Shown here one piece after another: positions 9,655 to 46,063 of a stretch of DNA of 64,000 nt (positions within the stretch are counted from its first letter, which is position 1; each line of letters opens with the position of its first letter). The DNA lies in NCBI GenBank assembly GCA_047495785.1, contig JBLDXI010000015.1, positions 4,960,001-5,024,000 on the forward strand. The letters are read 5' to 3'. The position numbers and the translations under genes were made by a program. The notes below the pieces were generated by a model, which did no database searches, was not told the DNA's origin, and saw only the letters and a list, made by a program, of their open reading frames with translations. The DNA comes from Lepidodermella squamata (taxonomy: Eukaryota > Animalia > Gastrotricha).

Positions 9655-10448
9655 TCACTTGTTATTGCCATCAGAGATTTTCTTGACTGGTCTATTCGAT
9701 TCGATTTGTTCAGGCTTTTGACTAGGCACTTTGTCGTCTGGCTCGTCAAACTGAAGCGTCGTGGCGTTGCCCAGACGCAGTTGTTCACTGAGCACTTGCA
9801 TTCTCTTCACCCTGAAAATAAATCTTCATAATAGAAATGCTTCAATAAGAATAAAATTATAACTAACGTATTAGTCCGAGGATTTGGTATATGCAGATCG
9901 AAAAGTCTGAACCGAGATGCGATAGCTGCAATTTGTTCCGGTTTCAATTTAAATTCGGTGGCCAACGCCGTAACTCTGTCTTCGGTTAGAGCAAGCGAAG
10001 ATTCTCGTCGATCAGGAGACGTCACCGCATTTTGACCAGGCTCAGTTTTGCCCTGAGCACCCGGTGGCGCGGCTCCGCTCATCGCAGGCGGCGCAACTTT
10101 CGCCAACAAATCAAGGAGTCGAGGCAGCGTGGTTTTGCCCCTAGGAACACGGCTAGGATCTGGCGGTATATAGTAGCCGAATTCCGGTTCCGAAACAGGT
10201 TCTCGCGACAATTTCGGCCGCGACTCAGCGTTGGGTGGTTCTCTCGTCGTCGGCTCAACAGAGTCGCGCAATCTAGCCTGATTAACTCGGTCAATCAGTC
10301 GTGTATCCTTTCGGTACAGCTCACTGTTCGGATCCACATCACGCTTCACCGGCTGTTTATTTTTCGGGGCGTCTAACGCTGCCTCTACACGCCGCTCAAG
10401 GTTGAAATCACGCACAGGTTTCTTCGCTCGAGCCAAAATAGCACCCAT
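9655..10448 (-). CDS. NDUFAF4: NADH dehydrogenase complex I assembly factor 4-like; exons 10448-9868 and 9811-9655
   Basis: MG...VRDFNLERRVE, KDTRLIDRV, VPRGKTTLPRLLDLL and LATEFKLKPEQIAAIASRF match NDUFAF4 motifs (RNFNLENRAE, KDEKLL, IPKGKISIVEALTLL). A GTTAGT...TTCAG intron leads into an open last exon. Confidence 0.8.
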
Positions 10449-22400: not shown

Positions 22401-22801
22401 AACTTACGATAAAAAAAACAGCCCAAGATGGCGTAGATGTGCACTGTGAGAGAGCATTTCTCATTAAATTAAGGTGGAGATTTTTGGTTGGACAATAACA
22501 CACGAGATTGATGAGGACACACGCTTCTACATGGTGAATTATTTTGTCATTTTTTCATCAGCAGTTGTTGTAACTTAATATTTTACAATAAGCGCCGTGA
22601 GTCTGCCAGACTCGCTCATTATCATCGTCATCATCGCGAATAAAAAATCGTAATTTCAATTTTAGCAATGATAAAAATTTAAACTTAAAGACTTGACACA
22701 AATTAAAAGAAATTTACAAAGATAGTATTATATCAATCCGGCTGTTGACTCTTTTTGAAAACATAGGAATCTGTCACATTAAAAAAAAGAAACAATCTGC
22801 G

Positions 22802-25800
22802 CTACATGTCTGTGCTGTGCACGTGCCGCCGTGTCGCCGCCCGCTGCCCTCCCGCCGGCGCCCGTTGTTGCGGCATATGCGGCGCCGTCTCGACGGGCGG
22901 GTGTTCGCCGCGGCGCCACGACTGGTAGCCGAGGAACAGCGGCTTCTGGCTGCGGCTCATCATCAGCACCTGACTGCCCATCCACTTCATCGATACGTCT
23001 ATCGTCGACGGCGAGCCTACGTCAGGTCGCTGGCGGCTGCAAGTTGGCGACGACGACGACGAGCACGTGGCCGATGTCGATGTCGACGACGAAGCGGTTG
23101 ACGCGTCGTGGCGACGATGGCGGCGCCGCAACACGACAAAGGCAGCCGACAGACCGGCGCCAGCTACCACAAGCACGGCGCAAAGAATAGCCGGTAGTAG
23201 AACTTCAACTGTAAGAAAAAACCGCAATTATAGCCAAAAAAATCAAATTCTTAAATTTGCTTACATTGGTGAATCTTTCCAGCAATCATATCAGCGCCAG
23301 GCCGAGGCGCAGCCATGAGGGCTGGTGTTCCTGGCAAGGCAGTGCTGGTCGGGCATTCGTATGTCGGGTCGCTGATAGCTATACAAAAACGTACAATTTA
23401 GCAATTGAATCGAGAAAAAAATGAAAATAATGACTTACTGAGATTGTAGCCGAATGGGCGGCATTCAAAGCCGAGGTCAGGGAAGGCGCGGCGCTCTTCG
23501 GGCAACGCAACGCGGAAGCCGTCGCGGCACCGGCAAACTCCGCCAGCGCACTCCTGGTCGTACCAACCGAAGTAGCATTCGTCGGTGGCGGCGCAACGTT
23601 CGCCGAGCAGCGCGTAGCGTCGACCGGGTGCTGTAGCCGTTGGTTTGCAGCGCCGACCGTCACTAGCCGGTTCCCATTGCGACACGCAGCTGCACACGCC
23701 CTGCGCCGAGCAGTACGAACTGAACGCGCCGCACGTCACCGACTCGTCGCAACGCTGGTTGAGCTGCGACGTCGGCAGGCACTTGGTGCGCTTCTCGTTC
23801 GGCCAGAAGCCGTCGGCGCAAACGCAAGCCGGCGAGAAGCAGTTGCGCTGCAAGCAGTCTGAGTTGGCCGGGCACATGGTGTTTTCATTGCACGGGCTGT
23901 AGACCTTCTCCTGCTCGTTGTAGACGTAGGCCTCAAGCGCCGGCGATTTGAGCTTCGGACGCAGGCGTGCAAAGCTGGTCGGCTCTCCGACACGCACCGA
24001 CGAGTGGTAGGTTGGCTCTGAGATGGTGTCGACGAGCAGCGACTCCGCAACACGGTCTGATGAATCGCCGTAAGGAATGACGGCTGGACCAGCGGCGTCG
24101 TAATGCACACCGACCATGTCACCGACGAGGGCGAGGATCTGCGATTCAGAGTCAACGTGGTACTCGTTGATGCCAACTTGCGTCGTTACAAACGAGTTGA
24201 AGCCGACAAGCGCGTATTGGTTGTTACCGACGCGGCGCCAAATGTCGAAGTAGACGCGGTGGCCAACGGGTTGGCGGCTGTCAAATCGCCACCACTTGAC
24301 GAGACCAGAGCACAGAATCGGCTTAGACACGTAGATCTCGAGGTTGGCAGATGTCTTCGTGTACTGGACCTCGGGCAGCTTGAACCAGTTGCATTTGACG
24401 ATGGGCACGCAGCGTGGGATCGGCGACCAGAAACCGTCCGGCTGGCACGTGATCGTTGCTGTTGAGTCGGTGCGAACTGCGCCGAGCACGCCCGTGTCAG
24501 TCGGGCCGTCCATCGAGTAGCCAGGCTTGCATGTGTAGGTGTAGCGAGAGCCCTGAATGACATCTTGCCCGCTGATGTCGGCGAACGAGATGAGTGGCGG
24601 CGGTCCGCAATGAACATAGGTTGCCTGGACAACGGCTTGCAGACTGGGGATGCGCCATTTCTTGTACAACGGGCCTGTCATGTCGATGAGGCCGTTCTGG
24701 CCGAGGATTCGCGTGTGATCAATGTCCTTGGCATAACCGTCGAACAACTGCTCGCGGCTCCAAGGCGTTGGGTCGACCTCGGAAGCGTGCGGGATGACCA
24801 TGAACTCTTCGGGCAGTTTCGACGAGTCGTAGTGAATACCGACGACGTAGCCCTTCTTGACAACAATAGTCTCGTAGTCCTTGACGACGTATTCTTCAAG
24901 GCCGACACGTGTTGTAACGATTTTGTTGAAGCCGACGAGCTGGAACTCGTGCTCGTTGATGGGCTGCCACACGCCGAAGTAGACGGTCATTCCGAAGCGG
25001 CGGCTGTAGTAGCGCCACGCCGTAACCGCACCGTCGCAGTTGAATGTCATCGTGGTGAAAATCCACAGATAAGAACCGACTGAACGGAGAGCCAGTGGTG
25101 GCGGGTCGAATCCTGCCTTGCATTGCACTGTAACCGGGAAAATAAAAGCAATATTAACATCAGATTCTCACAAATCCTGCAATCGCAGCGATAAGGCACT
25201 CGCAAAACTGAAACATGCGCTTTTTGAGCAAAAACACGCTGAATAGGCGCGCATCAATCATTCGAGGCAGGAAAGTAATTTGAAGCTCAGTTGGCGGCAA
25301 ATAGTTTCAAACAAGAGAATCACGCAGAGAAAACACTCTATTTACCGTAAGTTGTGGTAGCTGAAAAATAAATTAATTCATTAGGACGATCGTGAATTTT
25401 TCGTGCCTAATTCTTGCCACTATATGGGTAATGGGGGACCAGATGGAAATCACTGACGAATGCAACCGCGCGCGTTTTTTTCATCAGAAGAAACTTTACC
25501 CTTTGGCTGGCAAATGGGCGCCGTCGTCCATTGGCGCGTGTCGCTTTGGCACACAGCAACTTCGGGGCCAAGTCGCGAGAAGTTGTCGTAGCACTGATAG
25601 TGCGCCGAATCGCCCGCGTCCGTCGTTCCCTGGTCGAGAACGTAGCGGCCGTAGACAACAGGCGGCGGCAGGCCACATCCAGACATGACTGCATTGCCAA
25701 ACAGATGCGAAAGAGAAGAAAGAAAAGCCAAACGTTAAGCACAGATGAAGACAGCCAAAAAGCGGGGGAAAAACTTACACATAGCATTAGCGACAAGGGC

Positions 25801-28800
25801 GGGTGTCCTGCGCTGCTTTTTCACCGGCCGTTTGAATGAGAAGTAGATGAAACGACGCAGTTCTTCAACAAGCGCCGTATGGTTGATGGCGCGGTCGTTG
25901 TAGTCGAAAAGCGGCGTGCCTGGCGAGTCGAATAAAACAGGCATGGACGACATGTTACCGAGCGCGGCTTGGTCCGGCTGTGGGATGGCGTCGAAGTACG
26001 GAATGACTCCGTCGTTGATCACGTCCTCGTAGTGAATACCAACAAAGTAGTCGGCATCCACCATGATGCGCTCGCTCTTCGGCACTTCGTACTTCTGCAG
26101 GCCAGCGCCTTGCACGAAAACGCGGTTGGAGCCGATCAGTTGGTACAGATCGGCGCCAACTTTGCGCCAAATATCGAAGTAGACAACGGTCGGTGTCGAG
26201 CTGGTAGAGTAGAAGTCCCACCGGTTGATGATACCCTTGCACGCGAAAGTCATCGTAGTGAAGGCATTCAACCACCGGCCCGACTGCTTGCCCGATCGGC
26301 TGAGCAGCGACGGCGAGTAGCCGGCCGCGCAATCCGGAGCGTCACCAGCTAGATGAGGGGAAATTCAAGCGAAAAAATTCAAGTCATGCCACTCAGAGCG
26401 ATAGAATTTTTTTTAAGCAAATATCAAGCAAAGAAGAGAAAGTAAGAAGCGTTTCACACAAAGCGGTTTAAAAGCTGTTCAATTAACGCGGATCGTCGGT
26501 TTGATTTAGCGGAATATTGCTCAGGTACCACAGGCCCCATGGGTTTTGAAATTTAGACTAAAAACATGACTTACCAGTGCAGGTTGGCAATTGAGACCAG
26601 AGCCCTGAATCTTGGCATACGACATTAGCATCGCCGATCATGCGGAAGCTGGGGCGGCACGTGTAGGTGATCACTTGGCCGATCGTCGAGCTCGCCACAT
26701 TTGTGTTGGGATCAGCGTCACGAATCTTCGGCGCCGGGCCGCAACTAGCCGTCGATTTAACGGTCAGTTGAACAGCCGGAATTCGACGTTTCACGTTTGA
26801 GCCGAGTGAGAACCAGCCCTGGGTTTGCAACGCTCGCTTTATCGTTGGGTCGTACTCAGGCTGGACATAGCAATCGTAGAGATCGGACGGCTGGAACGGG
26901 CCGGAATTGACCTCGTCCGCCCACGGTATGACAGCAGTAGAGCCAGGTTTCGAGTAATGAATACCGACAAAGTCGTCCGGTTGAACAGGTACGCGTTGAT
27001 CGGGAGCTAGTTCAAGCACAACACGACCCTTTTGCGTGGCGTTCCAACGATAAGCCGTGACCAACTCGTAGCGATTCGTCATGAGACGGCGCCAGATATC
27101 GATCATAACCTCGGATCCATCGTCGCGAACGCTCAGGAAAATGATTTTATCGACTTCACCCGTGCATGCGACTCGGAGTTGTGGGCAAGCGACCATTTCA
27201 TTAGTCGGCGGCACTGATAGAACAGCATCGGAGCGGGTTGGAACGGTCGGCCCGGCTCGGCAGCGTGAATCCGGAACAGCGACGCACTCCGGTTGGTAGG
27301 GCTGCGTGAATTGACCGGCGACGCAGGAAATCAACAACGGACCGGCGTATTCGAAGCCGGGGGCGCAGTTGTAGACGAAGCTGTTGGCGACAGGGCCCGG
27401 CTGCGGGATGGCGTTGGCTACCAGGGGTGGCAGGCCGCAGCTGAGAGCTGGCGGGGCGCCCGTTGGCAGGTTGTCCGGGGCGTTGCGGAGGCCGCCGAGG
27501 CATTGTGGCGCAGGTGACCACTGGCCGTTCGGGGCGCATTCAATGTAAGGCAGGCCAACAAGTTGGTAAGTCGCGTTGCAAGCAACTGGAAGCCTTGTAC
27601 CAACGGCTGATGACCCGCTGGTCACAACTTGGCCATTAGCAACTGTTGGCGCGATTCCACATCCCGATATCGCAGCACCTGAAAAAATTGGTAAAATTGT
27701 GTTAGATACCAGTTTGAACTTGCACCCTTTTGTATCATATAACGAGCAGTTAGTTAATTATATATTAATTGTTTAATTAGATTCCAAGGCATTTTATAGC
27801 AAGACGCCGCAAGCTTGTACACATGCTCGATAATTACTTTGCGCGCCGCCGACGTTGAGTCGGAACGAGTAGAGCCGTTTCACTGGGCTGAAATTTTCGA
27901 TGCGAACGTTGCCGAAAATTCGCAACAACTCCTGAACATCGTTGCGCTCAAGCGGCGCAGTTCGGCAGTCTTGCAAATCGACAGGCTGGAATCCGTTCAG
28001 CTTCTGCTCGTTGGCGTACGGCACAGCACCGTGCCAGTCGAGGTCTTCGTAGTAGATGCCGAGGAAATCGCCAGTTTGCACAGCGAAGCGCTCGTTGGCC
28101 GGCAGTTCGTACGTCTGCTGGCCAATTTGCGTCGCGTTGATGCGGCTCGTGCCGACCAGGCTGATGGTGCCGTTGCCGTTGTCACGCCACACGCTCAAGT
28201 AGAACGCGGACGCTTCGTCAACAAGGCTCTGGTACTCCCATGACAGCGCCTGGCCTGGGCACGTTACAACCTGGGACGGGCAAACGTTCATCCAACTCGC
28301 CGGCGCAGCAAGTTCTTCCGGCTTCAGGATCAACTTTGACGGGCCGATTTGCGCCGAGCACGGTTTGGTATCCGGTATTTTCGCTGGGATGATGAATTCA
28401 CGCAAAAATTAATTCGAGGATTATTTTAAAAAATGCGCGCGCCCAAAGCTGAGAATTATTAAGGTGGATGCTCACCTACGCAAATGGGTGGCGTCGACCA
28501 GACCAAGCCTGGTAGACAAATCACCCGTGCGGCGCCGAAAAGCGTCGAATTTCCATTACACGTGTACTGAACAAACTCGCCAATTGCCGTCGAAGTTGGT
28601 TGAGCGATCAGCGAGCCTCCAGTAACCTTAGGAGGAGCCGGACACATTGGCGCAGCTGCGCAAATGAAGGCATATTATTATTTATCGATTTCAATCCAAC
28701 TCGCGAATACCCCAAAAGCGTTAATATTACACCAAAGCTTATTTTGCGTGAAAAAATAGAAACCTGCGCAAGATGGCGGCGCGCTCCATTTGCCGTCGGG

Positions 28801-31800
28801 TCCACACGTAATGGTGGCGTTGCCAACCAATGTGTAGCCCGAGCGGCACGCGACCGTTACCTCGGTAGCTGACGGACTGCCAACGATGGCCGCATTAATT
28901 ACAGTGGGCATTGGGCCACACTGAATTTCAACAACTTCACAGTTCAAACACACAGGTTAGGATTGTATTAAGGAGGAGAGTTGGGGGTTTTGTGTTACCT
29001 TGGACGTAAGCCCGCAGGAAAGGCACACGACGCAGCTGCGCGTCGCCAATAAGCACCCGGCCGTATCGTGACATTGCATCGACAATATCGGCGCGGAACT
29101 TGGGCGTCGCAGCGCACGTGTAGAAGTCGCCTGTTTGGAAGCCGTACGTGTTCTTCTGGTCAGCGAACGGAACCACGCCGTGGCGATCAGGCCGTTCGTA
29201 AAAGATGCCCACAAAATCACCGGCTTGAACGCGGAAACGGTCGAAGGTAGGCACGGAGTAAATCTAATTAAACAAAATTATCAGCTTTTCTCGTAATAAG
29301 TTGGCATGTGAATCATTACTATTCGGCCTTGGCTCGACGAGTTGTACGCGTTGTAACCGATCAATCGGTAATTAATGTCATTTTCGGAATCTCGCCGCCA
29401 TACAGCAAAGTAGACGGTAGTCGGGAAATCGGAGGCCGAGTAGAACTCCCAGCTAGCGACTTCACCATCGCAGTCGAATGCCATGTCTGGGCAGGCGTTC
29501 ATATACGTTCCAGGGTGTTCGATGGTTGTCACAGTCTTCCAATCACGCCCAGCTACGCACTGGTTCGAACCAGCTGTGGAAATCAACGACAAACAAACAA
29601 GTCAACACAAGCTCTCATTTCGAAATCGAAAGAATGTAACCCAAAAGCACAGAGTGTTGTTAGTGAAATTTGTTAAGAGTCCCAAAGTAAGAAAGAAAGT
29701 GAAAAGCAACACGTGTTTTGTTCGGGGTGCTATTAACCTGGTTGGCAATAAGGCAACGGCGACCAGTCGCCCGTCGCCAGGCAAATGACTGTGCCGGAGC
29801 CGGTGAGGTTGTAGCCGGTCTGGCACTGGAACTCGACCGTGTCACGCACGGCCGATAGACGCGTCGGGAACGATTTAACAGGCATGGCGTTCATCACCAA
29901 CGGGATCGGACCACAGGTCGCGATCGCCGTGGTCGTCCTAGTCACGAGTGGCGACTGTGTGGTGGTGATATTGGGCCCAACTAAACATGCACACACAATC
30001 ATCAGTAAGACGCATCACAATTACGATCTATTCGAGAAACCAAATCAAGTCTCAAAAATGAAGCTTACCGCAGTAGGGTGCAGTTGTCCAGTTGTTATCG
30101 GTTCCACACATAATCGACGGCTGTCCAACCATTTTAGCCGGAGGTGTGCAGGTGTAAGTCGCCGTAGATCCAACTGAAGTGGCTGCTCCAGTGAATGTTG
30201 CGCCAACTACAATAGGAATTGGCCCGCAGCCTTGTGACGCTGATAGAAAAATCAGGAAAATAATCAATACACGTTCAATGAACAACCCGAATTGAGTTAA
30301 TGTTAAACACCAAAAGCTTAGATATTAAACCCAAAGCGCGCGCGTCGAACACCCTGCACTTACGGACTACTTCGGCTTGCAAGCCGTAGAGACGCGTCAC
30401 AGATGGACCGGGGACGTTGACCTGGCCACGCATCGCGACTTGCTTCAGAATGTCACTCCGATAGATTTCAGTATCGACACAGTTATACAAGTCACTCTGC
30501 GAGTACTGACCGCGCTGGTTTGAGCTCACAAATGGTATAACACCGTACAAATCAGCTTGTTCGTAGAAAATGCCGACAAAGTCACCCTTCCGTACGGTTA
30601 TACGGTCGGGTTTGGCGATCTGTATAAGCTCCTGACCGATGCGAGTTGCATTCGCCAAATTGTACCCAACGAGGACGAAATCATTCGGGGTAGCATCGGC
30701 TTTTTCCGAGCGGCGCCAAACGCTCAGATAGACCGAGGTGCCGTCGTCCAAGATGCTGTAGAAGTTCCAACTGGCGATTTGGCCGTCGCATGGGATAGTC
30801 AAACCCGGGCAAACATTCAGCCAAGTTCCTGGCAAACCAGGCGCGCGGGTGAACGCGTAAGACGGTACAATTTGCCCGACGATGCAAGATTTCGAATCTT
30901 ATTAAGAAATTAATCCAAGTTATTAAATCCGAGAAATGGTAATTAAGCTAAACCCGAAGCGAAATAATGCAAGATAAAAACCTCTGCAAAACGGCGGGTC
31001 ACTCCACGTCAGGTTATCCTGGCAATAAATCTGTGACTTTCCAACCAGTGTGTACTCGGGACTGCATGCGTAGGTGACAATAGCACCAACTTTACGACTA
31101 GTGCCCGTTTGGGTGGCATACGGGACAAACGGGGCGTCCTGGCACACCTTAATGCCTGTATGAACAATTTATATTTCAGTTTGATTCAATGTTAACTCGA
31201 GTTATTAATGAGCGCAAGTAATCCCAAGCTTGATTTCTATTAGTATCAGGACGCCAAACGAACCAGAAACGAAAGCCTGGACTGATGGGATGCGGCGAGG
31301 GTACTCGGTTTCGACCGTAAAGTAACCCTGGGTCGACTGCTGTCCCATAATAGCTGGCGAGTACTTCTTGCTAGTTATGCACTGTACAAGGTCGCGTTCT
31401 TGGAAATTGAGCAGTTTGCTGGAGTCGACAAATGGAATGACAGGCGAATCATTGGCGCGGTCGTAGAAAATGGCGACAAAATCGCCCTTTTTAACCACGA
31501 TTCGACTCTGCGGCTCGACGTAGTAGGTTACCTTGCCGCGTACATTCGCGATGTACTTGTTGGTGCCGACTAGTACGAACCGCTCGGCATTAGGAGCCGT
31601 TCGTCGAACTACAGCCAACGTTACTTGGGTGCCGTCGGCTGCGTCAGAGTACAAGTCCCATCTCTCTATTTCGCCGTCACAGGTGAAGACAAGTCCCGGG
31701 CATACATGCAGGTCTGTGTTCGCGTCATTCGCCTTCACATTAGGCACAGGCAAGCCACCAGTGCAAAGGGCAGAGGGCGCAGCTGAATGGGTGTTCAAGT

Positions 31801-34800
31801 TACACAGTCGCAAATTAATTACTCGTAAGTGATAAATTTAGTTATTAAAATAATATTATAACCCCAAAACACTCTGAATGCGTTGATCGAAAATTAAACC
31901 GGAGGGAAGCTCTTTTCATGCAATCAAACCTTCAACTCGCGATCTTTCTGGGGCCTTTCGCGGCTTCGGCTGGGTTGTGCCATTAAGCGGCTTAGCCGTG
32001 GAAAGACTTTCCACGCACGTGACCACCCCAACCCAAACACCGCGGCGACACTCCAGTTTATTTTCGGAGACCGGGTCGAAGCCGGACAGGCAGTAGTAGA
32101 TAACAACACTGCCATCACGTGGCGCTCCGACATAATGAGGCACAGCTACACTTCCTTTGAACGTAGGCAACGGCTCGATGCAAAGTGGATCTGAAATAAA
32201 ATTGGCAAAAATCAGAATTGGGCAAGGAAACGGCATTATATCAGGGGTGAGTGATGGGCATGCTTGTTAACTATAGGGTAGAGCCATATTATTATACAAC
32301 CGCTACACCCGTGATGACTGAAAAAGCGGAGCCTACTGTTTCTGAATAAGCACGGGCTGTAAGCGAAGATGTCTTTGCGTCTGAATAGGGCATTCTGCCA
32401 ATAGGGCAGGGCCTGCGAAGCATCGCACCCCGTTCCAGGCGGTTCATCGTAGTCTTAATAAAGCATTATTTATCAGCAATTATTTGCGGTTTTCAATATT
32501 TGGCGAGTAATTTTGTCGTAATAAAGCTTGATACGTACCATCGTTGTTGAGGCGAATGTTGTTGGCGGGATTGTTTGAACGTGGCCAGGAATTAACAGGG
32601 AAATTCTTGCCACCCAGACACACAGGCAGCTGAGACCATAGGCCGCTAGCTAGGCATTGGATCACAAGTTCGCCAACCGGTTCCAGGCCCTCGTCACACA
32701 CGTACTCGGCCGTGTCTCCAGGACGGGAGACGTTGCCATCGACAGCGAACGGCAGTAGTGTCGCGTTGGCAACATACGGCGGGGATCCACAAGTAATTGT
32801 AGGCGCTCGAGGTACGCAATCAGGTGCCGGGGTCCAATGCCCGGTCGTCGTGCAATGAATATTCGAAGGCCCTTTAATTTCGTAACCCTCCATGCAAATA
32901 ACGTCGGCCCGGTCACCTTCAACCGCGGTCATTCCACTGAAATACGGCCAAACACTTCCGTGGGCAATTGCAGGCAACTCTCCGCATTGAACTGAAACAA
33001 TTGATAGACCAGTATTATTAAAAAATTATGCTGTAGATTGAAAACTCACTTTTGCAAACGGGTAGTGGTTGAGACCAAGAGCCTTTATCGGTGCAAAGGA
33101 TTGTCGCATCTCCGTTGAGCGAGAAACCCGGGGAGCAGGTTACGGTTGCTTTGTTTCCAACATGGCTGTGGTTTCCCTCGTACTGCGGCACCGCCATTCC
33201 ATTGGCAATGAACGGCATCGGGTCACAGGAACGCCGCGCTGGCTGAGGGACGCAATGCGGAGCAGTAGACCAACGCCCTGTGCCGAGGCATGTTGTAACA
33301 GCGGGGCCCACCAGGATGAAACCTGGTTGGCAAACGAAGTAGATCGAATCGCCGACAAGAGACAGCGCACGTCCGTAGAAAGATGTCGTTTGAACTGAAT
33401 TCTTAACTTCCGGACCTTCGCCACACGAGACCTGGCATGATGGCGCCTCAGACCAGGTATTGGAGTCCGAGCAAGTCACGCGGGGATTGCCGATCAGAGC
33501 ATAACCACTTAGACATTCGAAAACAACGGAATCACCTGGGTGGCTCACTGATTCGAAAAACATGGGTCGAACTACAGAATTAGCTACGACAGGGACTTCA
33601 CCACAGCCGCCACTTGATGTTCGAGAGGTGGTTTTCAAGCAGTTAGGTGTCGGCGTCCACAGTCCATTCGGCTGGCAAAGAGAAACGGCTGGTCCGTGAA
33701 GAACAAAGCCATCATTGCAGGTGTAAGTAACAGCGTCGCCTTCAATGCTCGACCGGTTCGTGTACGGAGTCGCAACTTGCGAGTTGGGTATATTGACAGG
33801 ATTACCACATGAAGTTTTACAAGTCGGCAGGAACGGGTACCAGGCACCTGAAGGGGTGCAGTGAACAATGTCTGAACCTAGCAGGGTGTAGCCACGGATG
33901 CATCTGTAGCGAACGCTGTCGTTGACTCGACTGTTATTGGCGATGAAAGTAGTCAAAATCTCGCTGTTGACGACCATAGGTGGGCCGCCGCAACCACGGT
34001 TAATGTTTTCACAAGTCGGAAGGTCCGTCCATTGGCCGGGGGTGACGCAGAAAACAAGAGACGGGCCGCGTATCTCATGCCCGGCGTTGCAAACTACCAG
34101 CAATGAGTCACCTTCAACGGCTTTCGGCGTCGCGTACATGAGATCAAGCCGAGCGTTTCCGATGGTTGGAGGTTTAGGGCAAACTGCTTTACAAGTCGGT
34201 GGGTTGGACCATTCGCCATTCTCGAGGCAAACGACCTGAGCCGAGCCCGCCATCACGAAGCCGGAATTGCACGTGTAATCCGCCGAAGTTCCGATAGGGT
34301 GGGTAAACTTGTTGAAGGAAAGAAGGTCGACCCCGGGCGCCGGTTCATTGTGCACGCGGACGATGCTGTTCGGTACCTGAGGCGGTAAGCCACAGCGAAC
34401 TTGCACTTTGCAGACCGAGCCTGGCTGAGACCACGTTCCGTCATCTTGGCAAACAACTTTCAGCGACGTGTTATCAACTGCTGATTCGTAGCCTTCGACG
34501 CAATCGTACGTGACGACTAGCCCTCGCGGTGGGTGAATCGGAATGGTGTTCAACGGCGAGATGGCAGCTTTCGGCAACATTGGAGGCGGGGGACAAACGA
34601 CTAAAAATAAGAAAAATAAATTAGGGCCAAGTCGATAGAAATCCCAGTAAAAAATTGCGTAAAACAAAGCGAAATATCACACATGAGAAGAAATATGGCA
34701 TAACATGTTCTGTTATTTCGTCCAAAAGCAGAGATAGAATAGATGGCTCAGATAATATTTTGTTACCGAAGCAGCAAGCGATATCGTTTCTTTTCGCGGG

Positions 34801-37800
34801 ATATTTTACCTTTCAATTTCTCAGCTGATTTTCACTGCAGTCGACCGGAACGCGGCTACCCGTCGGTGAGCTAAAACCTAGGTTAAGAAGCTTCCCAAAC
34901 CCGATTTCTTTTCTCTTCAACGCATTACAACAGTGTTTGACCGATTTTTTCAGGTAAATTATAAAATAATTAAATAAGAAATAAGCACCTTTGATGTGAG
35001 CTTTCCAGCTGTAAACACGTTTAACAGGTACACCAGTAACAACCACGCCACCTTGTCGAGCCATTTGGTTGTTGATATCTTGCCTGAAGGCACGTTGAGA
35101 CACGCATGACCGCAGTTCATTGGCCGAATAGCCACCCAGCGTCTGGCTGTCTCGGCTGTCAGCGAAGGGTACAACGCCAGGGCTGTTCTCGTTCTCGTAA
35201 AACAGACCGATAATGTCACCACGGCGGACGAGGATGCGCTCTCCGACCGGTACGACAGACAGTAAGGGTCCGGTTTTGGTCGCGTTGACAGCGTTGTAGC
35301 CGATCAGTTTGTACAGCGAACCCTCCTGACGCCATACAGACAGGTAAACGGGTGTCATGTCATTGCGAAGGCTCAACACCTCCCAGCGCTCGATTTCACC
35401 GTCACAAGGCACGACCTCGTCCGGGCAGATGTTCAACCAGTTGCCAGGGTCTGGCAAAACGTTGGGATTGCTTGCGTATAGCGTCGGCCCAACACTGCAA
35501 CCAGGCGATTCTGAAATAATTTTTCAATAATAATTACGCTGATTCAACTTGAAATGCGACAAACCATCGCAAACAGGCGCGTCTGACCAGAGATTTCCGG
35601 GTAAACACGTGATAGCAGAAATTCCCTGAAGTGTGTAGCCATTGCTGCACGAGTACATGGCCGTGTCGCCAATGAGGCTGTCACGGCCGCTGTAAGACGT
35701 GCGGACAGACGAGTTCGGCACGCTGGGGGGTGGTCCACAGGTTCCACGAGCTGAAATAATGATAGAAACAACGCATTAGTACATGTTAGATATTTCAATG
35801 AACCCGCGAAATAATAACCAAAAGCAATATAATACGACACCGAAATTTCCCAACAAGCTCTTCGGCGACTCAAAAGCCTCGACTCGGGTCAAACCTTCGC
35901 AACGTGGTGCCGGCGACCACTGTCCGTTGGCATTGCAGACGATGGTGTCAGGTCCACGAATCGAGAATCCGGGCAAACAGCGGAATCGAACGACAGAACC
36001 GATTTCCGAACTTTCACCGAACTGAGACGAGTTCGACACGGTCGGAATAGGGCCGCAAGTCGGAACGGCCTGGATGTAGGCCTTCCACTCATAGACGCGG
36101 CGGACGTTTGGATCGATAAGTGTGACGTAGTTTTTGTTTCGCATCTGTGACGACACTTCGTAGCCAAACATGCGAATTGAGATGCAGTCGACAACGTCTG
36201 ACGCGGCGAATGTCCGTCGGTTATCCATGGTGCCGTACGGCACGACACCCCGCGAAAATTCTGAGTCGTAGTACAAGCCGAGGAAATCGCCAGGCTGTAC
36301 GTAGATTCGCTTATCCGCCGGCACGTCGTAGACAATGCGTCCGATGTTAGTCGCGTTGACGACGTTCGAACCGACCAGATAGAAATTGTTCTGGCCAATG
36401 CGCCGCCAAACGCCGAGATACACCGAGCCAGAGTCGATATTGGAGTAAAACTCCCACCGGCTCAATTGGCCCGAGCACTGGAAACTAACGGACGGGCAAA
36501 TGTTGAGCCAGTTGCCTGGGTCGACCAGCTGCTGGGTGGGCGGGTTTGACCCCGTTAAAACCCCAGCGCCAGCTGTGCAAGCGGTCGATGCCAGGCAAGT
36601 CGGTGGTTCGGACCACGTTCCGCTGTTAAGGCAGGTTACCGATAGATTACCCGAGGGCGTCCCTCCTCCGATACAGGTATAAGAAACCATGTCTCCTGGT
36701 CGCGAGTCACGACCCGACCACGACAAAGCAGTAACCTGTCCATTCGCGACAGCAGGCGCTTGTCCACAAGTCGATGAAGCTGTGAATTTTCAATTCAAAA
36801 CGGAAAATGTTTAAAATCAGCCCGATAAACAACAACGTGAATCCCGCGCGCGTTTTCTACACCAAAAGCTGGGTCTACCATTCTACCTGAGCAAGTTGGG
36901 AAGTCGCTCCAGACACCCTGTTGGGTGCACGTGATAGTCGTCGGGCCGCTGAGCTGGTAACCGGGCGAACAGCGAACATTGATGACAGCGCCCAGCTTAT
37001 TACTGGCGCCACTGACCGCGCCGCCTCTGATGTCCGGAATCGGGCCGCAGTCAGTTGGACTACCCGGGGCAATGAAGCCTTGAACGCTGGGTATACGACT
37101 GACGAAATTTGTTGTAGCTGTCAAGTAGCCGACGGTGTTCATCGCCCTTTGCACGTCAACTTGGTTGAGCGGGAAATTGAGGCACTGGTACAACTGGCCC
37201 TGGGTGAATGGGCCGAGGTTGTCGGGTGCCGCGAAAGGGATGACACCAGTTCGGAACTTGTGGTCGTAGTAGATTCCCACAAAGTCGCCCGCATTAACGT
37301 AGATTTGTTCGTTTTCGGGTACAACGAATCTGATGAGGCCGAGACGCGTCGCGTTGTAGACGTTATAACCGACCAGTTGGTACTTGGACGGCGACGTTGT
37401 GCGCCAAACTGACAGGTAAACAGAGGTACCGTCGTCACGTACGCTTTGAAACTCCCAGCGCGTAACTTTTCCCGAGCAAGTGAAGTTCATTTGTGGGCAA
37501 AGATGGGCCCACGTCAGGGGTACGTGCAGCGTTTTAGCTGGCACGGCGTACCCAGTCGAGCACGATTTCGGCTGTCCCTCTTCCAACAGGCCTGAATTGT
37601 TTTTTTGTCAAATATCGGTTAAAATGTGATTGGTCAACAAAGAGCGATTCGACTGACGACGACCCCAAGCAAACAAATAATATGGTGGAGAGCTAAAATG
37701 TCGAAACTTACCGACGCAAACAGGTAGGTTGAACCAGAGTCCTGATTGAAGACACGTGACTGTCTCACTGCCTTGCATCGAGTAAGACGGGTTGCAGGCG

Positions 37801-40800
37801 TATCGAACAGTTGATCCGATCGAATTACCGCTCGATGCCGCGATGTAGCCGTTCGGAAGAGGCGGAGGCGGGCCGCAAGTTGTTGGCGTGTTTCCTGCAA
37901 CAGAGCAAAGGATTTGTTAGATTATTGCTCAATTATGAAACCAGTGAAACCCGAGATGGCTTCTAATAAGCCGTTATAATAGGTAAACCCAAATGCAAAA
38001 TGGTGAAATTTTCTACCTCCTTCACGCGGATTTGTTGAACCTTATAAAGTAAAAATGTTCGGATAGAATTGGGTACTTGAATTTGGGATGGAAAAATGAG
38101 GCGGCTCATTCTTCTCGTTATACTAACCGACGCATTGCGGCACGGGTGACCACTGGCCAGAACTCATGCATGTAATGATATCACTGCCTCGCATTTGGAA
38201 AGTCGGGTTGCACGTGTACTTGACATTGGAGCCGGGAGCATTGCTGCTGCCGGGTGTAGCCACGTAGCCATTTGGAATCGTTGGCGGCTGGCCACACGTC
38301 ACAGTGTTTGCTATAAAAATCATCGCAATCCCGATTAGAATTCATCGAAACAAAACTAAGGCTCAATTCTTCCCATAGCAACCTTAGATTTGCGTGATAT
38401 TAAATTATTTTGTAAGTGTTATTAACCCAAAAGCAAAAGTTTTAAGAAGTAGCGGGATCCCGAGGCACTGAGTGTTAATTACGCTGGCAAGTTGGGGCTG
38501 GCGACCAGGTGAGATTTGACTGGCAGGTGATGTATTCGGAGCCGACGAGCCGGTAGCCGTCGTTGCAGCGGTACATGACGCGAGAGCCGACTTCGGTGAG
38601 CTCGCCGAATGAGGCGGCGTTGTTGACGAACCACGGCGCCCCGCAGTTACCAGGCTTGCTGGGCACGCAAGCCGGAACCGCAGACCACGTCGAGTCAGAA
38701 CGGCACGTGACACTTTCCGACGAGGTCAACTGGTAATTGGGGAAGCACTCGTAGACAACAAGTTGCGTTGTCTGCAGCTTGATGCGGCCGTTAGCAATGG
38801 CTGGCGCTGGTGGGCAGGGCATGACAATGGCGACGCATTTAGGCGGAGCCGTCCACTGCGCACTCGATTGGCAAGTGATCGACCCCTGGCCATCGAGGCG
38901 GAACCCGCGCTGGCACGTGTAGCCAACCACAGTTCCAATGGCGCTGTTCGTTGAATTGGCATCAGCGTTTGTTACGACTGGCGGTGCGCCGCAATTTCTT
39001 GTCGGAGGCGGCGTGGTACCGACGGGTAGGCAAGACGGGAAAGGCTGTTGCCACAAGCCGCTAGAGCACGAAATCGCCGCCGGACCATAGAGGTAAAAGT
39101 CTGAGGTTAAGCAGGCGTAGGTCGCTCGTTGGACGGTGTTCGAAAAAGTGGCGATGTAGCCATTATTAATGTTAGGTGGGGCGCCGCATGAGCCAGCCTG
39201 TTGGCAAGTCGGCATTGTTTCCCACTGAGTCCCGTTTTGACACCGTATCACCGGCTTGCCGACCAAAACGTAGCCGGTGAAACACTGGTACAATGTTTGA
39301 GTAGTGTTAGTCATGACAATCATTCCGTTGGGAATATCTGAAGGAGCGCCGCAGTTGCGACGAACGCAAGACGGCGCCGTAGTCCAAGATCCATCGGCTT
39401 GACACGTTATGGTTTCGGAACCGACTAGCATCCAACCAGGGGCGCAGCTGTAGGTTGCAGTCGAGCCGACGCTTGACGAGTCGCCACGGCTCACCGAGTT
39501 GGCGACGAATGGGACAGCCGGGCAGGCGACAGAAACGCATCGTGGGGATGATGTCCACGTCCGAGTCGCCGGGTTGCATTGCACAGACTCGGGACCGGCA
39601 GCGAATGAGAAGCCTTGGTTGCATTTGTAAACGACAGCCGAATTATTCTGGCTGGCAATCGCTGCGTTCGGTACGGTCGGAGCAGTACCGCATGGCGATC
39701 CACTGGGGACACAGCGAGGCACGTCAGACCATGACCCGGTGTTCTGGCAAGTCACCGCAGCACTACCAACCAGGGTGTATCCGGCGGCGCAGGAGTACTG
39801 GAAAAGCGAGCCAACGCCTGTGTCGGAGCTAATCGGACGACCAGCTCCGTTGGTGAGTTGAGGCGGCTGGCCGCAATCGCGAACGCACGACGGCAGTTGA
39901 GACCAAGTTCCATTCGTCTGACAAACGATGTAACCCATACCACGCATGAGATAGCCAGTCTGGCATGTATAGCTGACTACAGAACTGGCAGTTCGAGCTG
40001 TCGAATTAGCGTTGCCGTTAGGTACCGTTGGAACCGCTGGGCATGTGGTGGCACCGACGCAACGTGGCGGCGTCGACCAGGTTCCAGTGGTTTGGCACGT
40101 GACTCGGTCATTACCGACCATCGAATAGCCGGCTTGGCATGTGTAAGTTAGCATCGAGCCAACAGTGGTGGCTGATCCACCGGCTGGGTTCGTCCACATC
40201 GAGTTCGGTACGGCTGGCGGGGTTCCGCAGTCACGTTCGCAGCGAGGAGCGTTGGACCAAGTGCCGTTCGAAAGGCAGACTATCGTCGACGGGCCGACTA
40301 CAGCGTATCCAGTTAGACACTGGTAGCTGATGTAGGTGCCAAGGGTAGTTTGGGACGAATTTGCAGTAGCAGCTGGGACTTGTGGCACTGATGGGCAGGA
40401 AACAGCCGGAGCTGCCGGGGTGCAAAACGGGAGTTGGGACCACTGGCCATTCTGCTGGCAAACCGACTGGCGTGGGCCTTGTAGTACATAACCTGATAGA
40501 CAAGTGAAAGCCACGGACGCGCCAATGTTATTCGCTGTCCCGATAGCAGCACCATTCGTGATGGATGGTATCGTGCCGCAGGTTGATCGCTGTTGGACGA
40601 CGCACGACGGAATCGGAGACCAGCGGCCATCGGATTGGCAAACCACGGTGTCATTACCGACTAGGGTGTAACCTACATCGCATTGGTACTTCAGCACAGC
40701 GCCGACGAGGTTCGAAGATCCAATGACGATCGCAGACGAAACAATCGGGATGGTCGAGCAAGATACGACAGACGTCGTTGCTATTATCAGGAAATCAACT

Positions 40801-43800
40801 CAAGTTAATTCAGTGTTAAGAGCGGCATAGCCACTTTACGCGATATCAAATCCGTTGCGTTTACTCGCTGTATAAACCCGAAGCGTGAAGCGTCAATTTG
40901 GGAGCGTAGAAACAAAATAGCATGTTCAATTAATAAAAAGCGGGTGGGACATACCTGTGCAGGTTGGCGGGGTGCTCCAAGAACCGTTCGGTTGGCACGT
41001 GATTTTGTTATTGCCATTTAGCTTGAAGCCGTTCGAGCACGCGTAGTAGACTGAAGATCCGAGCACGGTGGCTGAGAATTGCGGCTGGGCGTTCGATACC
41101 GTCGGCGGCAGGCCGCAGTCGACCTGGCACGTCGGCGGCGTCGACCACATGTTGCTTGTCTGTTGGCACACGACCTGCGCGTTTCCGATCAGCGTGAAGC
41201 CGACGCGGCACGAGTAGAACGCAGTTGCGCCAGGCTGTGTGTTGTCGAACTGCACATCGCCGTTAGCGACCGGTGGCGGGCGACCGCAGCCCGGGGCCGC
41301 GGACGAGGCGGTGCACGATGGCGGCGACGTCCAAGTGCCGGAGCGCTGGCAGACGACGGTTGAGGCGCCTTGAAGTTGGTAGCCGACGCGGCACGAGTAG
41401 AGCGCCGTTGATCCGACTTTGCTAGCATCGAACTGAACATCGCCATTTGTGATCGCCGGCGGTCGTCCGCAGTCGACCGTCGAGCCGGTAGTTGTCGAAG
41501 CTGAAGAGGCAAGCGGTGAACACAAAACGAATTAAAGCGGGTAAGGTTAGGAACAGTTAGGCAAAACACAACATGACAAAACATATAAGAAGCGATAGGA
41601 AGCATAATGTAATAAAGCGGCAAGTAAACATAAGCGGACCTTGGTGACAGATGGGCGGCACGGACCAGCGGCCGTCCGGCTGGCAGCGGATGACAGGATC
41701 CCCAAGCATTTCATAGCCCGGTTGGCAGCGCCACGTGATGATGGCGCCCACCGAAGTGCGATCGCCAAAGTGATCAGCGTTCGGCACTTCGGGTATCGTA
41801 GAGCACATGACGGTGGCTGAAGCCCGATAAGTAACATAACATTATTAGTAAGTGCATAAATCCCAAAAGCAACAAATAATAAAATTGCACCGAAATATTA
41901 GCAAAAATGACTCACCGACGCAGGCTGGCGGAGTTGACCAGGTGCCGTCTGATTGGCAAACCGTTGTAGCCGGGCCTTGCAGGGCGTAACCAGCCTGGCA
42001 CGTGTAGGTAACACGGGCGCCAAAGCTCTGGTTTTCCCCATTCGAATTCGAGTTCGGAACAGTTGGAGGCTGGCCGCAACCGAGTGGAACTGAAGTTCAA
42101 ACAATTCATTAGCACTCACTCGTCCAGCTTAATCATTTAATCCGACACTTACCACAGGTAGTTCCTTGTTGTCGAGATTTCCCTGGATCGCAGACGCAGA
42201 CCGGGTTGACAGATGCCTTGGTGCACATCAGCAAAGCGTCGCATTCGAAGTTCTTCGAGCAAGCGTCGCCGAATGTCTTGCGACGAATCGTCGAACAGCC
42301 CCATTTACGAGCCGATCGGCGATTCGCCTCGCGCCGCACGCCAGTGATTTGCGTAAAGATCCAGCACTGTCCGTTGTACGGGTTGAAGTACGAAATACCG
42401 CGGCACTCCTTCGAGTACTTGCAGTACTTCTCGCAATCACCAAGATTCTGCACCTCTGGGTCATTTATGATGACCGAGTCGCCGATGAGGGCGACGTCGT
42501 AGCGAAGTTCAAAGTCAGAAATCAACGGCGTGCGGCAAGTGTCCTTGCAGAACTTTAGGAAGGCCTGATAGCCGGGCGCCAAACGCACCTCGGAGCTGAC
42601 GTAGGAATAGACCTTGCAAGACCCGCGGCTGTAAGAAACGGCCATGCAGGAGGATTGCTGACGGCAGAAGTTCCAGCAGTCACTAGCCATTGGCATGGTG
42701 ATCTCACTAAAAATGCCCTTGAAAGTAGCGTCCTCGATCTTCTCCTCAGCACAATCTAGATGGTTTCAATCAAACAAAACTCGCAAGTTAACAGCTGATC
42801 TCACTTGGAATTCAGGACAAATAACTAAAAAGTGAGTATAGTTTCTATGTTTAAAGGCGTAAAGCATGCAAAGCGAAATAAGCTCAAGTAAGAATAAAAG
42901 CGAGTGGGTGGCCGAATACCTTGCCGAATGACAGCCCGTGCGAGGGGCAGGTTGGCGTTTCGCTGGCGTAGACTCGGGTGCGCTGAGATAATTCGTTCGG
43001 CCTCGATCGTCTCGTGGAAGATGGGACCGGCAACAATGTCGGAAAGTTCGGTGTCGGAGAACGGCCCGACACCGGACTCGAAGAACGGGATGACGCCCTT
43101 GTTGGCGCGGCGGCTGTAGTGCACGCCGATGACGTCGCCTGAGCGCACCGGGATCTGATTCTCCTCGGGCACCTTATAGATGTTTGCGCCGCGCTTTTTC
43201 GGCTTCACGACGTTGTAGTCGACAAGTTCGTACTGGTTGAGCCCGCGTGGGCGCCACACAGCGAGAAAAGCAGCGGGCACGGAGCCGTTGCCAGCTACCG
43301 GTGCCGTGTTGAAATACTCCCACTCCTCAATGAAGCCGTTGCATTTAAGCGGTTCCGACGAAAATATTGTCAGATGTGCACTTGGCGGTTTAAGGCCATC
43401 TACAGGCGCTAGGGGCTTGCCCCAGTTACACGTGCTCGCTATATTTTAAAGCAATAGGTAAAATGTTAAGTCAAGCGTCAAGGAAAGCATTCTGTCGTCT
43501 TTTAAACGGTTAAAATTGCGTGCGCTCGGAAAAATTGTTACTTTCAAGCGTGCATTTTTTCAAACATGCGAAAGCAGTCACTTTTTACACATAATAACAT
43601 ATCAACAGATAAAGCCGAACGAACCTGATTCCATGGCGCGCAGACACCGAGGCGGCTGTGACCAGCTGCCAGAAACTTGGCACAACACCTCGGGAGCGCC
43701 TTGCATTTCGTAGCCGGTGTTGCACGAGTATATCACCCGGGCACCGATCGTTCGCTCGTAGTTCAGCGGGGCTAACGTTGCGCTGTCAACACGAGGCGCA

Positions 43801-46063
43801 TCGCCGCAGTTGACACCTAGAACGAATGTTACATCGGTTAATAATCAACAATAAAAAATCAGAGATCGAAAGTCAAGTGAGAAAAACAGCTATTAAAAGC
43901 ACATCAATAATCCCACAACTCTACATGTTGTCTAAATCTGTTGAATGAAATATTTGTCTAATCTACATTTTTGTAACAAACACACACGGAAAACGTTAAA
44001 ATAGGTTTAGGTGAAAGCGAAAATATTGTATAAAGCAATGTAAGGGTTTAGGGATAGGTGCAGAATAGTTAGACTGGGTTAAGTTCCGGGCAGACCTGTT
44101 GCATCTGACTGAACGGCTTGCTTTGGCACATGAGCCCGAGGCTTTGCCAGCCTCATCGGCTTGGCATGCTCAACACTCGGGCGCATTTGCTGCAGAAAAT
44201 CTGTTACACCAATTGATTTAAAGTTAACACGGTTAAATGATACTAGAAATAATGACTGGCAATAATTTGTTGACGCTCAATGATTAAAAAATAGGTATTT
44301 TGATTATATCGAACCTGGGCAGGTGTAGAACAAAATCTGGAACTGATCCATGGCAATATCACTGTACGAGGCACCTCCGACAATGCCTTCGAATGAGATC
44401 ATGAATTTCTAAAAGTGAAAAATTCGATTCGATATTATCCGAGAGGTAGGCTGAAATAACTTACGTTGATGTCGTTCGGAAGGTCTGAGAGCGCAAGATC
44501 GGGCACAGAGGCTTGAAGCCACCGATCCTGTTGCGAACCCGACTTCTCCCATAGAAGCTTTTTCGCCTCGCCGTAATTGAGATAGACATTCAACGTTCCG
44601 ATGGTGTTGCCGTACATGTGATAGTAAAAATGAACATTGAAGCAAATGGCGCGGCCTCGCATTGTTGCGGTTTCGAAGGCAGGGCTCGTCAGAACGGCGC
44701 GGTCGAGCAGATTGCGGCGAGTCGACTCAATGTATACGAAGGCGCCGTTGCCATTGATGTCGCCATCAGGGCCAGTGCCAGTTGTCGGCGTCGCTCCCGT
44801 CTGCCACGACCAGTCGAAGATGTCGGCATCTTTCATCTGCGAGAACCCGCACAGAGACTCATCGAATGAGCAGGAAAAATTGCCAACAACCGACGCCGGG
44901 CCTTCGACGTCTGGGCAAGTGCCAGCTAAGACGAAAATGTCATCGATTGCAATGTGGGAGTTTGTTCCGCCACGAATGCCGTCGTATAAAATTTGGAAAG
45001 AGCCGGATATCTCCAGGGTACGTTGATAAAAGTGCCACATGTTACCCAGCGATTCGCCGCCAAGCGTGGTCAAAGTTGCAATTTGCCCTGAAGTCTTTTG
45101 CTTAACACGCAACGATCCGATCGCAGTGCCGAACATGTGGTAGTAGAACTGAAGGCAGCAACGCGAAGTCGGGCACGAGATGTCACCCGAAGACATCGAA
45201 GTAACAGAGCCGTCCATGCCTTGGGCTGAGTTAGTATACATAAAATAGCCATCTTTACTTTTCAAGGTGTGGTCGATCGATGGTCCAGTTTGGGAGGTGG
45301 GCGGGAATCCTTGAGCTCGGGCCCATGAGAAACCGAACTGCTGATCAGGTTGAATCGCAAAGCCACAAGTGTCCTTCTCGAAATCGCAGCGAAACACTAC
45401 GTTGCCAAGAGCCATAACAGCGATCAACGCTGGAATTTGGTTGTTTGTTTCGGACGTAGGCGCCGCTAACGAGCCGCCAGCCGCTGCTAATGAAGCTTCC
45501 AAGTCACCATGAGCCAAATCAATACGCGCTACATCCGAATAATCGACGGTAGTGAACGGGCCTGGTTCGGCCTTGCTGAAGTAGGGTATGACTCCGACGG
45601 CGCCGTTTAGGCTGTCGTAGTGGTAGCCGATGCAGTCGCCTCGGCGCACTGCGATGGGACCACCAGACGCGTCACCGAGCGGCACGTAATTGTGGCCGAA
45701 CTTGTTGGCGAAGACACGAGTCGACGCCAAGCGCCGATACCGGTTGACACCGGTCGGCCGCCATACGTCCAGGTACATTACCGTATTATCACTAGTAGTA
45801 CTGTAAAACTCCCATTGTTGCACTGCTCCGTCGCAGTCGAACGTTAAATTCGGGTATATAAACAGGCCTCGCAGCGGCCTGACTTGAGGGTTGCTTTCAA
45901 TCCGCCGTCCGGCGATGCAAACACTTTCACCTGGAAAAAAACTCGAAACTAGAGGTGGATTCGATTTTCAATTGAATTACGTACCTGAAACGAGAATAGA
46001 TTGCCTGAATTGCGCCAAAAACGCGCACAAGGCAACAAAGCCGAGAGATATCCTCGTTAACAT
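22802..46063 (-). CDS. Giant (~6,100 aa, hand-summed) type I membrane protein: signal peptide, 13 copies of an unassigned ~160-aa domain, ~46 Sushi/CCP, 2 MAM, 2 PAN/Apple, EB/EGF-like modules, TM helix and short cytoplasmic tail; ~37 exons
   Basis: Signal exon 46063-45985 (MLTRISLGFVALCAFLAQF...). I traced a chain of GT-AG, frame-preserving exons down to the TM exon 23208-22802 (VLLPAILCAVLVVAGAGLSAAFVVL-RRRHRR). The Sushi pattern C-xx-P...Y/F-x-C-xx-G(Y/F)...C...W-S-xx-P-x-C recurs throughout. One candidate linker exon (~32453-32337) is uncertain. Confidence 0.85.
23439..23900 (-). other. About three membrane-proximal EB/EGF-like Cys-rich modules
   Basis: PCNENTMCPANSDC...CVCADGF, LNQRCDESVTC...CSCVSQW and LGERCAATDEC...CAGGVCRCRDGF. 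Confidence 0.65.
32600..34600 (-). repeat. Second tandem array of 10 Sushi/CCP modules
   Basis: Eight units in exon 34600-33050 and two in exon 32991-32539. Confidence 0.9.
38483..42089 (-). repeat. Tandem array of 18 Sushi/CCP modules, 13 of them in one 2.3-kb exon
   Basis: Counted from repeated four-Cys/Trp Sushi units in exons 42089-41916, 41816-41640, 41500-40955 and 40780-38483. Confidence 0.9.
42153..42755 (-). other. Two PAN/Apple-like modules plus one EB-like Cys module within the giant receptor
   Basis: DCWNFC...CMAVSY...CKVY and DCEKYC...CRGISY...CWIF fit the PAN pattern C-xxx-C...C-x-x-x-S-Y...C-x-L/I. They are followed by FGDACSKNFEC...C...CVCDPG. Confidence 0.75.
44315..45400 (-). 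other. Two tandem MAM domains within the giant receptor
   Basis: CDFEKDTCGF...W...TGPSIDHT...GYFMY...CLQFYYHMFG..IGSL...IAIDDI, then CSFDESLCGF...FDW...TGP.GD...FVYIES...FYYHMYG..IGTLNV...W...DIAMD. Confidence 0.9.

Follow-up and report, generated by a model that had tools for sequence, protein, structure and literature searches.

A conserved, GCUU-based motif repeated in the central introns of a giant receptor gene of the gastrotrich Lepidodermella squamata: a candidate set of splicing-regulator sites

Introduction

How a short sequence in an intron can influence the splicing of a neighboring exon has been described for several systems. G-triplet enhancers of short introns, which McCullough and Berget are said to have described in 1997 and 2000, reportedly bind heterogeneous nuclear ribonucleoproteins (hnRNP) F/H and U1. 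For Dscam1, Graveley is said to have described in 2005 a docking site and selector sequences in an exon cluster. Muscleblind (MBNL) proteins have a specificity summarized as "YGCY + GCUU", their sites lie downstream of the exons that they activate, and this behavior is conserved from Trichoplax to human (PMC5041496). Finally, in spliced-leader (SL) RNAs the Sm site lies 20-60 nt past the donor, and the Sm motif of the SL RNA of Ciona is AGCUUUGG (bioRxiv 10.1101/2020.12.23.423594). Here, we describe a short motif, GCTT(T)(Y)GG(G/T) on the sense strand, that is repeated in the central introns of a giant modular receptor gene of Lepidodermella squamata (Gastrotricha). The gene lies on a stretch of 64,000 nt (GenBank assembly GCA_047495785.1, contig JBLDXI010000015.1, positions 4,960,001 to 5,024,000), which is called the window below and whose numbering is used for all positions of this gene.

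The motif set would be a conserved cluster of regulator sites in the introns of one particular gene, of a kind that is already known. Like the G-triplet enhancers, it has GGG in the 5′ part of short introns, a flexible position and multiple copies, but GGG is found in only ~60% of the copies, the remainder having GGU, GGA or GGC, and the GCUU half is better conserved. With Dscam1 it shares a repeated one-per-intron sequence in one orientation along a modular exon array, in the gene of a large cell-surface receptor, but the motif of 8-9 nt is shorter than the selectors, lies near the upstream 5′ splice site and is without a docking complement. The likeness to MBNL site clusters consists in a GCUU core mostly in pyrimidine context, which is intronic, sometimes paired and located downstream of exons (PMC5041496). 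As for the Sm motif of tunicate SL RNAs, the same 7-8 nt are found at a comparable distance from the donor, but the copies in the window are within ordinary cis-spliced introns and are not flanked by stem-loops.

The motif in the central introns

The receptor gene (20559..46195, minus strand) has ~46 exons, and its model comes from a home-made Viterbi gene finder trained on the long open reading frames and splice sites of the window, together with Pfam and a collinear ortholog, L001. The ortholog backs the central block; the gene ends, including the outermost exons, and some tiny exons are poorly supported. The central block extends over 27679..41915 on the minus strand and contains ~22-25 predicted introns, two tiny predicted exons within it being doubtful. 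In these introns, the expression GCTT[TC]{0,2}GG gives 16 sense matches, distributed over 13 of 25 introns, against 1.27 ± 1.13 and a maximum of 8 in 2000 dinucleotide-preserving shuffles, and it gives no antisense match at all. A sequence-only reading of this DNA had listed 15 plus-strand copies of CC(V)A(A)AGC, all in the same orientation; every one of them is indeed present and reads GCTT(T)(Y)GG in the sense of the transcript.

The form GCTTTTGG occurs eight times on the minus strand between 28.7 and 41.9 kb, always within an intron, and once elsewhere in the 64 kb, on either strand. Across the window as a whole, the looser 7-mer CCVAAGC shows no enrichment (29 found, 29.4 expected); the signal resides in the restriction to one strand and to introns. 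When a position weight matrix (PWM) was made from the motif copies, every match of at least 11.5 bits in the 64 kb fell in central introns, a scan that is circular for the copies used to build the matrix and informative for the rest of the window. In an unbiased k-mer scan of the window gene and its ortholog, no enriched words except the rarer (CG)n runs were shared more widely than CTTTTGG, GCTTTGG and GCTTTTG, which have 0 or 1 antisense copy.

A T-rich tail, for example TTTAATA, frequently follows the consensus. The motif is found in 15 of ~18 central introns of at least 84 nt, and the minimal introns of 54-64 nt are without it. In accordance with the positional bias that the sequence-only reading had proposed to look for, the median distance from the 5′ splice site is 42 nt downstream, and 77% of the copies fall in the 5′ half of their introns; in some introns two copies are spaced by 15-20 nt.

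Going along the minus strand in the direction of transcription, GCTTTTGG is located at 41863..41870 (intron 41817-41915), 45 nt from the 5′ splice site, and GCTTCGG at 40878..40884 (intron 40781-40954), where the orthologous intron of L001 has GCTTTTGG at 7100. Another GCTTTTGG at 38427..38434 (intron 38311-38482) is followed by the variant GCATTTGG at 37989..37996 (intron 37895-38127) and by GCTTGGGG at 37663..37670 (intron 37592-37711). GCTTTTGG comes again at 36862..36869 (intron 36780-36886), where the ortholog intron of 66 nt is without the motif, and at 35818..35825 (intron 35751-35894), where the ortholog has two copies. The 388-nt intron 34601-34988 has GCTTCGG at 34766-72 and GCTTTTGG at 34722-29 (together 34722..34772). 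Further on are the variant GTTTTGGGG at 31862..31870 (intron 31783-31929), GCTTGGGA at 31222..31229 (intron 31156-31263) and GCTTCGG at 30954..30960 (intron 30898-30981). GCTTTGG and GCTTTTGG are paired in two introns, 20 nt apart at 30310..30337 (30330-37 and 30310-17; intron 30240-30363), with a (CG)4 run abutting the first copy, and 19 nt apart at 28712..28738 (28732-38 and 28712-19; intron 28656-28763); between these introns a single GCTTTTGG is at 29641..29648 (intron 29574-29737). The last copies are GCTTTGG, followed by GCGCGCGC, at 28443..28449 (intron 28384-28475), and the degenerate GCTTGCGG at 27807..27814 (intron 27679-27837). The copies at 37989..37996, 34766-72, 31862..31870 and 27807..27814 had not been in the list of the sequence-only reading.

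Runs of (CG)3-4 adjoin several copies, at 30338-30346, 28434-28441 and 36840-36847 in the window and at 9664-9670 and 18881-18889 in L001. Such runs are unusual in AT-rich introns, and their positions are not orthologous between the two species; a role as a second half-site or as an accessory element is conceivable.

Specificity for one gene

Is the motif a property of this gene, or is it a generic feature of longer introns, such as an enhancer that is needed beyond the minimal size of ~54 nt? In favor of a generic feature, the motif is confined to introns of at least 84 nt, and most introns of the neighboring genes are minimal, which leaves a small set for comparison. Nevertheless, the longer introns that can be compared show no excess. 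The outer introns of the receptor gene itself, 16 of which have at least 84 nt, give one match in 3.8 kb. In the neighboring genes, seven matches were found in 49 predicted introns with a total of 11.9 kb, ~28 of these introns having at least 84 nt, where the shuffle rate of the central introns scales to ~5, and no PWM match of at least 11.5 bits falls in them; the sequence-only reading had not noticed the motif in introns of neighboring genes, and within the window this is confirmed. Two other contigs, L007 and L008, which are probably from the species of L001, are likewise without an intronic excess, the gene finder having performed poorly on L007. We therefore regard a generic feature of longer introns as improbable. 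Loci of paralogs (L002-L004 and L006) do not show motif enrichment either.

The introns had also been described as otherwise unrelated, and whole-intron alignment of the window introns by MAFFT finds nothing similar outside the motif. That the introns are copies of introners or of miniature inverted-repeat transposable elements was rejected, as they cannot be aligned except at the motif.

Conservation in a second species

A ~175-aa domain of the receptor, which is described below, matches 336 representative proteins at E <=0.001, and the search of protein representatives with this domain led to P0001, which is encoded on the contig L001, a metagenome scaffold from ENA. L001 and the window gene are collinear, their exons have 64-79% nucleotide identity, and for one 885-nt exon the proteins are 80% identical. 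At four-fold-degenerate sites the proportion of differences is p = 0.645 and the Jukes-Cantor distance 1.47, which is saturated, so that neutral sequence is randomized between the two species. Most intron positions are common to the two genes, and orthologous introns align at the motif alone. Even so, L001 has 13 sense copies, GCTTT(T)GG or GCTTTCGG, in 11 of its 26 central introns, against 1.21 ± 1.04 and a maximum of 5 in shuffles. All 13 are intronic and mostly in orthologous introns, and two copies are antisense. Several ortholog pairs have their copies about equally far from the 5′ splice site: 41 nt for GCTTGGGG and 42 nt for its counterpart GCTTTGGG, 23 nt for the degenerate GCTTGCGG and 22 nt for the first of two perfect copies in its ortholog, and 26 and 34 nt in another pair. 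In other pairs the motif is shifted within the intron, for example from 89 nt for the copy at 29641..29648 to 23 nt in the ortholog. Presence or absence of the motif agrees in ~16 of 20 orthologous intron pairs (~10 both with, ~6 both without, four discordant).

Because four-fold sites are saturated while the introns can be aligned only at the motif, its neutral survival is excluded, and on the strength of this comparison the motif is under purifying selection. The sequence-only reading had already suspected selection from the survival of the motif amid diverged flanks, and the comparison with a related species that it had proposed bears this out. It had also allowed that the motif spread with exon duplication, which turns out to be insufficient: the internal repeats of the receptor (copies of the ~175-aa domain) are 31-40% identical to one another at the protein level while the L001 ortholog is 84% identical, so that the repeats are far older than the species split, and descent through module duplication therefore cannot explain how an 8-mer survived.

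A second contig of the L001 species, L009 (P0152), is 98.9% identical to L001, and there are no differences between the two in 41 motif positions, where 1.3 would be expected, a comparison without power. A scan of JGI metagenomes gave no further orthologs.

Some other features were seen on L001. The window intron 26349-26574 (minus strand) and the L001 intron 20158-20381 have kept a 13-nt block GCTTTGTGTGAAA and the 10-mer TTCTATCGCT, the rest being unalignable. At 11753-11775 of L001, two motif copies overlap a perfect 12-nt palindrome, CCAAAGCTTTGG, which is a potential hairpin. At 16470 of L001, the gene finder picked GG|GT of a motif copy as a splice donor.

The GCUU core

Among the sense 4-mers in central introns of the window, GCTT has the strongest over-representation (41 observed, 14 expected), and CGCT is also enriched (19 against 7 expected). 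The excess of GCTT is found as well in the outer introns of the receptor gene (37 against 17), in L001 (45 against 23, rank three) and in L005, a much more distant ortholog (19 against 4, with 0 antisense), and antisense counts of GCTT are at expectation. For comparison, the neighboring genes have 67 against 50. Thus, introns of the receptor gene have a GCUU excess in all three species examined (the window species and those of L001 and L005). L005 has fewer introns and no GG form; it has dense sense clusters of UGCUUG/UGCUUU at 6290-6535, 9330-9510 and 3950-4070. Also in the window, the 139-nt intron 41501-41639 (minus strand) is without a GG form and has six YGCUU (CCGCTTA, CCGCTTT, TGCTTC, TCGCTTC, CCGCTTT and CCGCTTG), a set in keeping with a GCUU-based code of wider reach in this gene. 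The base 5′ of GCTT in the central introns of the window is T in 11, C in 14, A in 13 and G in 3 cases, and U always follows on the 3′ side.

Because the GCUU core stands mostly in pyrimidine context and the sites are downstream of exons, a protein of the Muscleblind/MBNL type is the leading candidate for the factor that would bind them, as a lead only. It is quite possible that a different factor or a composite site is concerned.

The receptor gene and its exons

The window contains ~8 animal genes. Across their models intron length is bimodal, with a sharp minimal class of 52-64 nt in most genes and a remainder of longer introns; the central block is unusual in that its introns are mostly of 84-390 nt.

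The predicted product of the receptor gene has MAM, PAN-like, ~29 sushi/CCP, seven ~175-aa and EB/EGF modules, of which Pfam finds MAM, Sushi and EB. The ~175-aa domain contains cysteines, and its seven copies are located amid sushi domains between 27838 and 37591 on the minus strand, for example at 36064-36594. Its conserved pieces are CP..F.C.G...WE, VYLSVWR, LVG.N..NAT, GDF.GIYY and GV.PF, and the Pfam search gave no match for it. The central block arose via internal duplication of sushi and ~175-aa-domain modules. Its exons are 171 to 2298 nt in size, exons with sushi only being mixed with those that have sushi and the ~175-aa domain. In the gene model all central-block introns but one are of phase 1, and exons between them are frame-symmetric.

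What the motif may do

What is observed is the existence of the motif, its confinement to introns and to the sense strand, its specificity for this gene within the window and its conservation in orthologous introns. What can such a set of sites be for? In our view, GCUU(U)(Y)GG(G/U) would be a cis-acting pre-mRNA element that purifying selection has preserved in the longer introns of the central block. Most likely a sequence-specific RNA-binding protein would recognize it, with a single site or a pair in each intron, usually 20-90 nt past the 5′ splice site, and from within the intron the bound protein would enhance or regulate splicing of the exon upstream. Depending on whether the factor is present or absent, the sites would keep all modules in the mRNA or allow them to be skipped in frame, which is feasible because the central exons are almost all of phase 1-1. 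The flexible position, the pairing, the location in the 5′ half and the GCUU core all fit a site for an RNA-binding protein, and the shifts of position between species are what is expected of a protein site; such an anatomy would be typical of sites from which a protein bound in the intron enhances or regulates splicing of the exon before it. We give a probability of roughly 0.6 to the reading that the motif is a selected cluster of RNA-binding-protein sites that regulates splicing of the central block. A more ambitious version, in which a dedicated splicing code works mainly for this gene, with one factor reading one site per module intron and setting how many of ~15 frame-symmetric modules are included or the order of intron removal, and with the sequence identity to an SL RNA Sm motif possibly pointing to a link to the spliced-leader machinery, seems doubtful to us.

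Several points weigh against regulation by a protein bound to these sites. The concordance of presence or absence between orthologous introns is inflated, as motif presence correlates with intron length and intron length is itself conserved. Donor and acceptor scores are alike whether or not an intron has the motif (Mann-Whitney p = 0.64 and 0.98 in the window and 0.84 in L001). Gene specificity is judged only from the 64-kb window and a handful of related contigs. The U run is followed by a conserved GG(G/U) that is foreign to the MBNL motif, and in about one third of the copies A rather than a pyrimidine precedes GC, two points against a Muscleblind protein as the factor. And it is from sequence that we infer the reading at the RNA level, the binding of a protein, the effect on splicing and the identity of the factor.

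Two other functions of the motif were considered and rejected. Compensation for weak splice sites was given up since splice-site scores are equal with and without the motif. The GT that follows the motif as an alternative 5′ splice site was also given up as a general role: GT is found within four bases after GG in only 13 of 17 copies in the window and in 6 of 13 in L001, and reading frames upstream of this GT are usually closed. An Rfam scan of the window gave no match, so that the motif does not belong to a known RNA family.

The sole public run with the locus is of DNA, and its contigs cross the introns unbroken in the 6 kb that were compared (27850-33849 of the window). More than 150 positions in these 6 kb are listed as different from the window, which points to a second haplotype or strain, and none of these listed differences, a minority of the total, is in a motif core.

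Other explanations

Short conserved motifs in introns can be enhancer sites at the DNA level, and transcription factors bound there might drive expression of the gene. The (CG)n runs next to several copies would suit such sites. Yet all 29 strict copies in the two species are in transcript orientation, antisense copies number 0 in the window and 2 in L001, and the copies are not clustered: they are spread, one per intron, across 14 kb. This single orientation and one-per-intron spread argue for a reading at the RNA level, or at least in a strand-specific manner, and sites for transcription factors are in our estimation quite unlikely.

Could the motif instead be an Sm-site-like element that brings factors of the Sm or SL type to these donors? 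Its form GCUUUGG equals the core of AGCUUUGG, and the distance from donor to motif matches the criteria for SL RNAs (bioRxiv 10.1101/2020.12.23.423594). On the other hand, folding of 26 introns gave neither flanking stem-loops nor a common hairpin or accessibility pattern, nor does the prediction leave the motif unpaired, its mean unpaired probability being 0.33 against 0.50 for intron interiors. The A that should precede the core is present in only ~30% of the copies. We know of no precedent for Sm assembly on introns, and consider this explanation very unlikely.

The general proposal of the sequence-only reading, a repeated splicing-control element preserved by selection, has strong support from the ortholog. 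Of the two forms that it had offered, a site for an RNA-binding protein and a Dscam-style selector, only the former fits. In the latter, base pairing of each copy with a single docking site elsewhere in the pre-mRNA would lead to the choice of one module, and one sense motif per intron along an array of frame-symmetric module exons is the arrangement that it calls for. The exact complement CCAAAAGC, however, is absent from the pre-mRNAs of both the window gene and L001; the few CCAAAGC or CCCAAAGC sites are exonic, at positions that are not orthologous; and the best partners given by RNAduplex are GC-rich exon sequences without conservation, so that the search for a docking site, which had been proposed, returned nothing conserved. 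Moreover, exons with sizes as unequal as 171 and 2298 nt and with differing domain types are not interchangeable, and the motif is closer to the upstream than to the downstream exon. There is only a slight chance that the copies are selectors of this type. A neutral relic left when introns were duplicated along with their modules, or the outcome of a bias in mutation or insertion, would suit a block built by internal duplication, but we give it hardly any credence, given the age of the repeats relative to the species split, the saturation of neutral sites between the species and introns that have nothing else in common.

Concluding remarks

We know of nothing described about splicing regulation in Gastrotricha. 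If sites for an RNA-binding protein are confirmed here, they would offer a clean natural case in which more than ten introns of a single gene have preserved a short code although the divergence is saturating. With a motif this short, strict and repeated, it should be straightforward to pull down the factor and to run tests with minigenes. Even if the motif were a constitutive enhancer only, it would still help to explain why these introns exceed the ~54-nt minimal class that dominates the genes of the window. And if the sites do regulate the central block, they could determine how long, in modules, a large adhesion-type receptor becomes, which is possible because nearly every central exon is frame-symmetric.

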